This document shows, piece by piece, positions 1 to 4,624 of a stretch of 64,000 nt of DNA. The DNA comes from Oikopleura dioica (lineage: Eukaryota > Animalia > Chordata). The stretch lies in the NCBI GenBank assembly GCA_907165135.1, contig OU015567.1, forward strand, positions 4,154,001-4,218,000, written 5' to 3'. Positions within the stretch are counted from its first letter, which is position 1. Each line of letters opens with the position of its first letter. The notes under the pieces are model-generated. The model saw only the letters and a list, made by a program, of their open reading frames with translations. It was not told where the DNA came from and made no database searches. The position numbers were made by a program, and so were the translations under genes.

Positions 1-3000
1 GAATCGAAATTAGCATAGTAACTTGACTCTACGCTTCTTCGTTTTCTCGATTCTTCCGGGCTCTTTTTGAAGGATTCAACAAAAGATTGGTAGTAGGAGG
101 TTATCATTCGTGCTGCCCCTAACCCTAGACCTAACCAAAGGGGCTACGCCCCCGGGACCCCCTCACCTCAGGCCTGAGCCAGGGGGCTTCGCTCCTCTGA
201 CCCCTGTTTAGAGTTCCCAGTCCCTAACCCTAACCACTAGCCCAGATTCTGGAGATCTTGAATGGCTCAAATCAAAGGGTCGAATGATAATCCCTCTCTA
301 CGATAAGATTCGTCCTTTCCTGATAATATGAGTCCGCCAATAAATCTGAGTAACCGTATTCTCCATAAGGATCATAATCTGGAAGACCCCCTCTCACATC
401 GCATCCGTCAGTAAAACCAAACTGGTTATCAAAACTTTCTTGTCCGTCAAGAATATAAATCGTGCTGAAGAAATCGTACCACTGAAAACTCGACGGATCG
501 GGATAAAAACTGTCAAAGAACTGAAGAGAATCGAAGAAATCATTCCTTTTTGATTGAAAATAACATCTTTTTCATAATTATTTGCTCTTCTGTTAGACCA
601 ATCAAGGTTATTTTTGCTTTTTCTGGTCTTTATAAAGCAGTTTATGCTTATGGTAAAGGGGTAAAGACCGTTCCTTCGGGATCCAATAAGCAAAGTCCAT
701 CTTTTATAATTTCGGAAAAATCATCATTCATTTTTGCCACAAAAATGATATTTCCCGATTTTAAGTCTTGTTTGCACTTTACAATTTTTCGTTGATAACA
801 ATACTCGTCCAGGGATTGATGACTAAGTTCGTGGGGACTAGGTTCGTGGGACTAGGTTCGTAGGTGGTTATGCCAAAGTATGCAAGATGGGGTATGGTTT
901 CCTTTCTATAAGGAACAATGTGGTGCGACTAGGTTCGTGGGACTAGGTTCGTAGGGGTGCTAGGTTCGTGGGTTTTGAAATTAGAGATTTTTCTATAAGT
1001 ATTATAAGTATTATAAAAATTATAATTTTTTTTTATAAGGAACAATTGAGTGCGACTAGGTTCGTGGGACTAGGTTCGTGGGTTTTGAAATTTTTTTTTA
1101 TAAGGAACAATTAAGTGCGACTAGGTTCGTGGGACTAGGTTCGTGAGTTTTGAAATTTTTTTATAAGGAACAATTGAGTGCGACTAGGTTCGTGGGCTAG
1201 GTTCGTGGGTTTTGAAATTATTTTTATAAGGAAAAGGAGGGTGCGACTAGGTTCGTAAGACTAGGTTCGTGGGTTTTGAAATTTTTATAAGGAAAAGGGG
1301 GTGCGACTAGGTTCGTGGGACTAGGTTCGTGAAGACTAGGTTCGTGAAGGTTAGGTTCGTGGGACTAGGTTCGTGGGACTAGGTTCGTGAAGATAAGGTT
1401 CGTGAAGACTAGGTTCGTGAGACTAGGTTCGTGGGACTAGGTTCGTGGGACTAGGTTCGTGGGTTGTAAAATTGGGTAAAGTTGAATGGTAAAAATGACT
1501 TTCCCACCCCCCAACCCCCAAAATAGGCCGCTAGGCTCTTTAACTGAGTTTCTATGTTAGCGCTGAATAACAATGGTTGCCTTAGAATAGAAACCCACGA
1601 ACCTAGTCCCACGAACCTAGTCGCAACCCATTTTTCCTTATAAAAAATTTTAAAAGCCACGAACCTAGTCCCACGAACCTAGTCGCACCCCATTTTCCTT
1701 ATAAAAAAAATTTTAAAAGCCACGAACCTAGTCCCACGAACCTAGTCGCACCTCCCTTTTCCTTATAAAAATAATTTCAAAACCCACGAACCTAGTCTCA
1801 CGAACCTAGTCGCACCCTCCTCTTCCTTATAAAAATAATTTCAAAACCCACGAACCTAGTCCCACGAACCTAGTCGCACATAATTTCTCCTTATAGAATA
1901 AAAATAATTACCAATTAAAAACCCACGAACCTAGTCCCACGAACCTAGTCGCACATATTTTTTCCTTATAGAATAAAAATTCTAACCAATCAAAAACCCC
2001 CGAACCTATATTTAGATAGCAATATTATTTTATATGATCATATAATTACAATACATATATATAAATATATATAAATAAATATATACATATAAATAACACT
2101 TAATCATTATAAATAAAAATATACATAGTAAATAAAAAACTCACGAACCTAGTCCCACGAACCACGTTTTCAAGCCAGCCACCCACGAACCTAGTCTCAC
2201 GAACCTAGTCCCCACGAACTTAGTCATCCCACACCTCGTCCAGTGTCGGCAGCGTTGCCTGTTTCATTGACTTCGGAGGAACAGTTGTGGTTATTGCTCT
2301 TTCCGTTGTAGTTGGGCAGTACCCGAGGCCGTAGACATATTTTTGATAGGCATCTTTGTCCAAAATTTGCTCGATATGCTGAATATCATAAAGCGGCCGG
2401 ATTGTTTCGAGTGAGTCGACACATTCTGATGCGTTCTTTTGAACAATCGCGAGATGGTTGATGTTGAATTTTTGTTCTGAACGAATGGGGAAAAATTGTC
2501 AGGAAGAAGGGCTCTTTCTTCTGCTTCCAATTCCTCAAAACTTTGCGGTTCTATATCCCCGATTGTTATCACAAATCTGTCCTTTTCCGCATCATCTCCG
2601 TCTTCTTTAATTTGCCTCAGTGCATAATTCAAATCGACTGGCTCCTCCTTCAATTCCTTTTTTATTCCCTTTATCAACTTGTGCTTCGAAGTGTAGTCAG
2701 TTGCCTGTCCATCTTTTTGAATGAGTCTCACGACTCGTCGTTTCTTACCATTTTCTATTTCGACTTTTTTGGCGAATCGGGCAATTGCTTTTGCTGTCAT
2801 TTTTTCTTTTTCAGGAGATGTCTTAGAAAGGTTTTTGAAGGGCGGAATCAAAGAGGAGAAAAATCATTGATTTCAACCTTTTTCCTGTTCGCCAATGATC
2901 AGTTCAATCGTCGAAATATCTTTCTTAATATCCTTAATACTTGCACCAAGATTTTCACAAACAGCTTCTTTAATTCTTTTCAAGTTATCCCGATTTGCAT

Positions 3001-4624
3001 CAAGTGAGTCTATCCGAACAACTTGATCTACAGCAGCATGAAATTCACGGAGATTCTGGTCGGTTTTGTTTTTATGGTCAAAATTGACTTTGTCCATAAT
3101 GACGATTCCAATAGTTTTGACTTTTGGCTTCTGGGTGTAGACGATTCTCGGGCTTGAATTGAAAATTGGGTCTTTATGTGGGTTCACAGTAAATTTTCGA
3201 TAAAAAAAGGTTATCCTCCTTGATTTCGGAAAGGATAAAAATTTTCAAATAAACTACTTTTTTGGTCATTTTTCAGTATTTCAGAAATTTCGGAACCTTC
3301 CCTCCTCCGCTTCTGACATCCGGAAATCCAGATTCCAGAGCATAATGAAACACAAACGCAATTTTCGGACTCAGCGGGCTTGGCGGGTCATTTGAATTCG
3401 GACAGCTCGCAAGCTCAGCCGCTCGAAAAGCGCGCTCATAAGCGTCCATTTTTCCATCGACCAATGCTTTTCGCACTTTTCCGCCGCCAATTCTGTCAGT
3501 GTCAAAATACCAAAAGGCCGATCAACATACTCAGTCGTCGCCCATTTTTTCTTCATCGAGTGTCCCTCCATAACATGCCCAATTCTTCTGTAGTTGAAGT
3601 CTTTAAGCGCTTTTGAGATGAGTTTTTGCTCGTCTTTGATGATTTGAATTGCGGTTCCTCCGTTTGGATTGTCATAATCGACCAAAACTTCGAACTCGTC
3701 GGTGCATTTCGCTTTTGATTTTCGAAGAGATCTGATTTTTTCGCGGCTGGCGGAGGAGTCAGCCCTGGGTACTGCTCTTCTGAGGCGGAAATTTCGCAGA
3801 GGCGTTGCTGAAAAACTGGCTTTGATAATCAAGAAAATGGCTTTGGAGTGTACCTTGATCATATTCGTAACGGTATTAAGTTTCTGCCAGCTTGTGGGCT
3901 GAAAGACGAAGCAGTGGTTTTCAGAAATTCTCAATAGCTGGCTTGGCGAAAATTCCTCTGGCGTAACTGAAATGACAAATGGAATGTCCTCTGGCTTCTT
4001 TTCCTCGCTCCAAAAACTTTCTGCCAGCGCGGATTTTTCATCAACGGAGCCGATTCCAGAGTGCAGCAGAATCACCACTTTCTTGTTCTCTTTTCTGCCG
4101 CCGGAAAACGCCATGGAAAATAAATCAAGGCTCTTGTCCGTCAATTTGTCGATCGGAATCGTTTTGCCTGGGTTGAGTGTGATTCTGTCAATTTTTCGCT
4201 TCAGAGTGGCGTATTTCTGGGTGAAGCCTGGAACTTTTGTTGTTTCTTTATTGAAAGCGAAGAGTTTTTGCTGATGGAAATTCGTTGCGCGGTTGGTTCG
4301 AGGGATCCAGGTTGTCAAGTTTTGAAGCATTCGTTTTTGATTATCAAGAGCTTCTGAATTATGACTTTATTCAAGGGTTGGGAATGGAGGGTCAAAGAGG
4401 GTTTGCTCGTCTGTGATTGGCTGACGCGTGAAATGCCGGTTTTTGATTGGCTAAAAGGTTAACGCCCGCTTTAAAGAGGTCATTATTCAGAACTTACCTT
4501 GATTATCGTGCCCTGTATCGACCATAAAAACAATATCCATTTTAAACTGATTTCCGCAGAATCTGAAATCATCTCTCTCCGCCCTCGCGTGAAATAGAAG
4601 CAATAAAAATCTAAAATTCATCAT
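1..4624 (-). CDS. Secreted multi-VWA-domain protein (spliced; probably runs off the left end)
   Basis: Exon 1 (4624-4498) reads MMNFRFLLLLFHARA (signal peptide) then MDIVFMVDTG (VWA beta-1). A GT-AG intron (4497-4354) joins in frame to ORF 3371-4330, which has FSGGRKENKKVVILLHSG. Further degenerate VWA-like segments lie in ORFs 2873-3187 and 2291-2851. The frame continues across the 2234-804 intron (TLPTLDE|YCYQRKIVKC). A D/Y-rich exon near 545-300 and ESRKRRSVESSYY near 20-60 follow. Two single-base homopolymer corrections are needed, and junctions below ~650 are unresolved. Confidence 0.7.
97..293. repeat. Small inverted-repeat (MITE-like) element with GC-rich hairpins and (CCCTAA)2 fragments
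   Basis: ggttatcattcg (99-110) is inverted, with one mismatch, at cgaatgataatcc (281-293). The interior has gggctacgccccc and gggggcttcgctcc motifs and cctaaccctaacc. Confidence 0.35.
813..2234. mobile_element. Non-autonomous foldback/Mutator-like element with 9-bp TSD
   Basis: Direct repeat CTCGTCCAG at 804-812 and 2235-2243. Long inverted arms (~813-1465 and ~1590-2234) are built from tandem GGGACTAGGTTCGT / ACGAACCTAGTCCC units, with terminal gatgactaagttcgtgggg inverted at both ends. No transposase ORF. Confidence 0.85.

Follow-up and report, generated by a model that had tools for sequence, protein, structure and literature searches.

Among animals, the marine chordate Oikopleura dioica is the classic case of wholesale intron turnover, and where its new introns come from is still debated. 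The locus described here raises that question in concrete form, because it carries a transposon in the middle of a coding exon: is the insertion removed from the transcript as an intron, or does it break the gene? The window, as we call the whole 64-kb stretch of DNA that was analysed, had received an initial annotation made from its letters alone, which proposed that the element is itself an intron of the introner kind. Our analysis places the element in a defined structural class, recovers the unoccupied site as DNA and weighs the proposed intron against other fates of the transcript.

A foldback transposon with a 9-bp target duplication

Window positions 813-2234 are occupied by a non-autonomous foldback DNA transposon of 1,422 nt. 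A perfect 9-bp target site duplication (TSD), CTCGTCCAG on the plus strand, flanks the element with copies at 804-812 and 2235-2243, as had been recognised initially. Read on the minus strand, which is the coding strand here, the copy at 2235-2243 makes up the 3' end (9 nt) of the upstream coding block, and the last two bases of the copy at 804-812 (805-804) provide a putative acceptor AG. The putative donor GT consists of the first two bases of the right terminus (2234-2233), and both dinucleotides lie where the initial annotation had put them.

A perfect inverted 19-mer is common to both ends, located at 818-836 on the plus strand and at 2210-2228 on the minus strand, for which the chance expectation is 0; no other occurrence was found in the 64-kb window. 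The left terminus (813-861, plus strand) comprises five unmatched nucleotides, GGATT, then the 19-mer and then 14-nt subterminal repeats. The right terminus (2182-2234, minus strand) is composed of 14-nt repeats, the 19-mer and six unmatched nucleotides that read GTGTGG on the minus strand. The terminal inverted repeats, initially described as intact, are perfect over the 19-mer, but the outermost 5-6 nt (GGATT versus GTGTGG) are not inverted copies of each other. Since these outermost nucleotides differ, the GT is supplied by one end only. A metagenome scan with the 19-mer returned two bacterial matches, both at a gene start reading MTKFVG, and these were dismissed as coincidence.

Between the termini lie two opposed arms. 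The left arm (1028-1331, plus strand; inverted pairs I1-I25) is built of 63-nt tandem units in 4.8 copies, each holding two 14-nt units, and at its inner end is an array of the 14-nt unit (1301-1463, plus strand; 11.4 copies). The right arm (1591-2008, minus strand) consists of 64-nt units (5.8 copies) and 75-nt units that are the reverse complement of the left-arm units. Within the opposed interior arrays the 14-nt unit, nested in the 63/64-nt tandem units, gives 19 matches against 0 expected. A central non-repeated spacer (1464-1590) forms the loop of the predicted hairpin, and an AT-rich simple-sequence patch (2010-2138) is found on the right-arm side only. Folded as RNA, the element is predicted to adopt a single hairpin with a minimum free energy of -779 kcal/mol, the strong stem of which begins 6 nt from one end and 13 nt from the other.

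No transposase gene was found inside 813-2234, where the longest open reading frame (ORF; 69 aa) is encoded by the repeat units, and the 64-kb window contained neither a further copy of the element nor an autonomous one. In public DNA contigs, depth over the element reaches 10-300 times that of the flanks, and some contigs follow it as far as 2234 before entering unrelated sequence. We conclude that the element is one of a multi-copy family and that its right boundary is exact. The merged flank of two other family copies after 2234 begins AAAACTAGG and not CT...AG (two contigs, 0.62 agreement). Since these flanks differ from ours, the weak evidence of two contigs suggests that the AG-ending TSD is probably a property of the present site and not of the family.

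The interrupted exon and its gene

The host is a gene for a secreted protein with a von Willebrand factor A (VWA) domain and a Thr-rich linker, on chr2 of the O. dioica assembly OKI2018_I69, which represents the Okinawa strain. Our reference contig, L001, is OU015567.1 of GCA_907165135.1 in the reverse-complement orientation of the window (0 mismatches over 14,540 nt), and it extends 6.4 kb past the window start. A 319-aa ORF at 3374-4330 on the minus strand is 100% identical to Oidioi.mRNA.OKI2018_I69.chr2.g5035, and a Pfam search of the pieces flanking the element gave a weak VWA match, upstream, as its sole hit.

The element sits in a minus-strand coding exon. The upstream half (2235-2480) contributes 82 codons of the Thr-rich linker, ending ...ATLPTLDE, and is homologous to tandem paralog B and to the environmental contig L004. 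The downstream half (651-803) contributes 51 codons beginning YCYQRKIV, is 59-61% identical to the same two relatives, and lies outside all annotated models. Paralog B is found 7 kb downstream, is annotated as one 1,273-aa gene and, starting at the signal peptide and VWA domain, is collinear with the whole interrupted region. Across the site it reads ...SKTLQD-YCEDRKIIQCDQ... without interruption (...TLQD/YCEDRKII). Two Oikopleura contigs from marine metagenomes, L004 (JGI Ga0115008_10003724) and L005 (ENA ERZ27250700), are 9.8-12.6 kb long and hold a full relative of B at 70-80% protein identity. Both are likewise continuous, as ...SITLDE-YCEDRKIIKCDQ... (...TLDE/YCEDRKII in L004); their source is presumably another Oikopleura lineage, and they are a useful outgroup for the gene family. 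In the interrupted gene the order is ...PTLDE, the element, and then YCYQRKIVKCKQ.... Alignment to paralog B and the environmental relatives, together with DNA contigs that join 803 to 2235, shows that the two flanks of the element are one exon.

When the minus-strand frame is read unspliced past 2235 it gives VWDD and then a TAA stop at 2220-2222, 12 nt into the element, as the initial annotation had noted; the same phase reopens at 803. This stop is also where the public annotation ends model g5034 (...LDEVWDD). Where the paralog shows one gene, that annotation has three models: g5035 at 4540-3553, g5034 at 2800-2220 and a 609-aa model at 14551-16686 of L001. The stretch 803-395 is outside all of them.

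Relative to paralog B, homologous exons of the minus strand contain four one-base frame breaks, at ~3741, ~3515, ~2474 and ~575, and the sole intron of g5034 (2541-2477) skips one such break. Each is one base short in a run of A or T (A6, T4, A5 and A5, respectively). The assembly derives from Nanopore reads of a single male, polished with Illumina data, with two haplotypes merged and a heterozygosity of ~3.6%. An Illumina contig that is identical to the window over 475-700 (226 nt) has two extra letters. From these patterns the four breaks are most likely residual Nanopore homopolymer errors, which would fragment the gene models. Other than at these breaks, all blocks that align to B are open and stop-free over more than 6 kb.

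The unoccupied site segregates as genomic DNA

The initial annotation had suggested looking for an empty allele, and one was found as DNA contigs in two runs from two studies. Contigs of these runs (X1 and X2) connect 803 directly to 2235; 1,431 nt are missing from them, and 9 letters at the joint fit either side. Their haplotypes differ from the window in the flanks: the X1 contig is 292 nt long, and its two sides of 133 and 159 nt differ from the window at 4 and 12 positions, so it represents another haplotype. Contigs of both runs also pass through ordinary introns (2707-2918 and 3084-3730) and are therefore genomic DNA, not cDNA. At position 716 every contig of both runs has a letter other than the window's, which means that the filled allele is absent from view in either. 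The single 9-bp copy on a distinct haplotype identifies an unoccupied ancestral site, not an excision footprint. These contigs confirm that the insertion is young, polymorphic and real.

The same observation constrains how transcripts must be read. The spliced junction sequence occurs as genomic DNA, so a junction read proves splicing only when it also carries the flanking variants of the window haplotype.

Splice signals of the candidate intron

The putative intron runs from 2234 to 804 on the minus strand and comprises 1,431 nt with GT...AG ends in phase 0. Its removal would take out the element plus one TSD copy and restore the ancestral frame, and on this point the initial annotation was accurate. 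It also described correctly the geometry of the introner route, in which the element end contributes the GT, the TSD contributes the AG, and the phase is 0.

Transcript data bear on this junction as follows. Two oligo-dT RNA runs gave 0 reads on all of window positions 1-4200, neighbouring exons included, and are hence uninformative about it. The public annotation was built with RNA-seq intron hints, and none of its gene models uses the junction 2235 to 803. The 82-aa flank searched against 1.84 billion representative proteins found its own model, g5034, and a spurious tick protein only; the flank and the whole model P0005 found nothing further in a set of 5.8 billion proteins, including no transcript-derived protein across the site.

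The donor, GAG/GTGTGG, is mediocre and matches CAG/GTAAGT at 5 of 9 positions, and the 14-nt repeats offer TAG/GTTCGT, a 6 of 9 match, at 30, 44 and 86 nt downstream of it. The acceptor, GACGAG/, has a G at -3, and the letters leading up to it are rich in purines. It competes with three acceptor-like TAG sites upstream, inside the element end (823-852, minus strand), which would start exon 2 at 822, 837 or 851, adding 19, 34 or 48 nt, respectively; among them the 48-nt option alone keeps the frame (+16 aa). For comparison, five introns with annotation or homology support were taken from this gene and its paralog and inspected by eye. T-rich runs precede their ends, which are CAG, CAG, AAG, TAG and TAG, and GTA opens four of the five. 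We also built a splice-site weight matrix on GT...AG candidates that join ORFs within the window; it settled on false positives, and its scores were discarded.

The predicted hairpin places the two putative splice sites within ~20 nt of each other and leaves just 13 nt unpaired before the AG. In such a fold a branch point would fall in duplex RNA, with no room for an accessible one. Judged on these splice signals, precise removal as an intron appears less likely than disruption of the allele or leaky splicing.

Relation to known elements and introns

Drosophila FB elements and Mutator/Foldback-type elements have long inverted arms built of subrepeats, are mostly non-coding, generate a 9-bp TSD and consist of hairpin-forming DNA. 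The present element is like them in its arms, coding incapacity, 9-bp TSD and hairpin, a likeness of structure. Duplications of 8-9 bp are made by Merlin-type elements as well, so the TSD length does not single out a superfamily. In a full-text search, Oikopleura and foldback were mentioned together in no paper. Proposed intron gains by transposon insertion in O. dioica, as treated by Denoeud and colleagues, are said to be fixed introns inferred by comparison. Our locus shares with them the species and a transposon insertion as potential intron seed, but here the insertion is segregating and an empty allele exists.

Introners are documented in Micromonas, Aureococcus, Chrysochromulina and others (Huff et al. 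2016; Gozashti et al. 2022, PMC9860276); the median length of a family lies between 30 and 654 nt, animals rarely have such families, and the Chrysochromulina type carries its 5' site and co-opts a 3' site. The locus resembles them in being a non-autonomous DNA transposon with a TSD and inverted ends in a coding exon, with one potential splice site in the element end and one in the TSD. In contrast to introners, the element is 1.4 kb long, its TSD is 9 bp and not 3-8 bp, and its splicing is putative; moreover, the AG of the TSD is seemingly no family trait, and the element is polymorphic and rare and not fixed.

The host of a further comparison is also an appendicularian tunicate, the larvacean Fritillaria borealis, in which non-canonical introns derived from miniature inverted-repeat elements (MITEs) are described by Henriet et al. 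2019, in the part of PMC11282704 that summarises that work. As summarised there, these introns also have inverted ends and are bordered by TSDs, and evolution has made the spliceosome more tolerant. Their splicing has been demonstrated; they are short, occur in very large numbers and mostly have AG-AC or AG-AT ends, unlike our single long GT-AG candidate.

Competing explanations for the interrupted allele

We lean towards the view that this is a young polymorphic insertion allele that breaks the present gene copy or, at best, is leakily spliced, an account we regard as probable without being secure. Under it, a multi-copy non-autonomous foldback-type element inserted recently by cut and paste into the middle of a coding exon and produced the 9-bp TSD. 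On the window haplotype the reading frame runs 4 codons into the element and then stops. We infer the consequence for RNA from sequence: the transcript is most likely truncated or degraded, or heterogeneously spliced through the weak donor- and acceptor-like sites of the terminal repeats, and exact removal of GT(2234)...AG(804) would be at most one outcome among several.

The initial annotation favoured a newborn introner-like intron, in which the spliceosome removes 2234 to 804 precisely, using the GT of the element and the AG of the TSD. In the form considered here, the hairpin would help by setting the two sites side by side, and the insertion allele would yield a normal protein. We regard this as rather unlikely. 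The arrangement would leave the mRNA unchanged, restoring the paralog-like ...TLDE/YC... exactly with a phase 0 GT...AG intron, and the pairing of the element ends in the predicted fold brings the sites close together. Precedent exists as well: a 5' site in the element with a 3' site from the TSD is documented in introners of other eukaryotes, ~11% of introns in the O. dioica assembly are non-canonical and are tolerated, and a review table (PMC3443670, citing Denoeud et al. 2010) lists transposon insertion as a source of Oikopleura introns. Against this, RNA reads, transcript-derived proteins and gene models give the junction no support, the RNA runs having covered none of the 4.2 kb, and the RNA-hinted annotation lacks it. 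The acceptor is weak, with stronger TAG sites close upstream, and a length of 1.4 kb far exceeds the introner family medians. Absence of the insertion from two other DNA samples fits a rare and possibly harmful allele. A broader form of the idea, that foldback/hAT transposons active in the Okinawa lineage are spliced out from the moment they land in exons, with the hairpin joining a weak GT to a weak AG, strikes us as still more doubtful.

It is also unlikely, in our judgement, that the element landed neutrally in a copy that was already dead or silent, this being one of at least two tandem paralogs, such that splicing or disruption would be of no consequence. The four one-base frame breaks relative to paralog B would be expected of a dead copy, and a second repeat at ~107-292 splits another coding stretch. 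RNA-labelled contig runs of O. dioica hold almost none of the sequence words of the locus, and the protein searches found no transcript-derived relatives. The breaks are, however, all single-base shortfalls of the kind typical of residual Nanopore error; the Illumina contig with two extra letters and the long open, stop-free alignment to B speak in the same direction. The probable homopolymer errors could likewise be taken to favour an assembly artefact, in which a chimeric join placed a repeat copy in the gene. That is very improbable: a perfect 9-bp duplication exactly at the inverted-repeat ends, together with an empty allele that has exactly one copy, is the signature of transposition and not of misassembly.

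Implications

As it stands, the locus holds an ordinary young insertion allele. Its interest is that both states, the exon with and without a fresh transposon, occur in one population, and that flanking variants tag each allele, so that allele-specific RNA could reveal if a freshly inserted element behaves as an intron right from its first generation. Were splicing on landing true, a 1.4-kb intron at birth would be segregating beside an intron-less allele in an animal, and this would provide a missing mechanism for the very fast intron turnover of the species. For annotation, transposons and probable residual homopolymer errors have broken up the public gene models at this locus, so that a single gene appears as three.

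Other features of the host gene

The repeat at ~107-292 is, like the element, of high depth. It contains telomere-like CCCTAA motifs, and a 10-nt inverted pair, TTATCATTCG / CGAATGATAA, stands at its two sides. It divides into two blocks a Tyr-rich stretch of coding sequence that runs on unbroken in paralog B. An intron and an insertion are both conceivable, and no clean joint of an empty site was found for it.

On the minus strand, positions 673-623 contain a candidate 51-nt GA...AG intron after ...CLLDPE, and no GT...AG pair around this segment keeps the frame that the paralog demands. In B and L004, a 45-nt GT...AG intron separates ...HLPIV from SQC... (L001 19215-19259), and the interrupted gene is without an intron near ~2440 (HLAIVQKNASEC); this intron is thus a presence/absence difference between the tandem paralogs.
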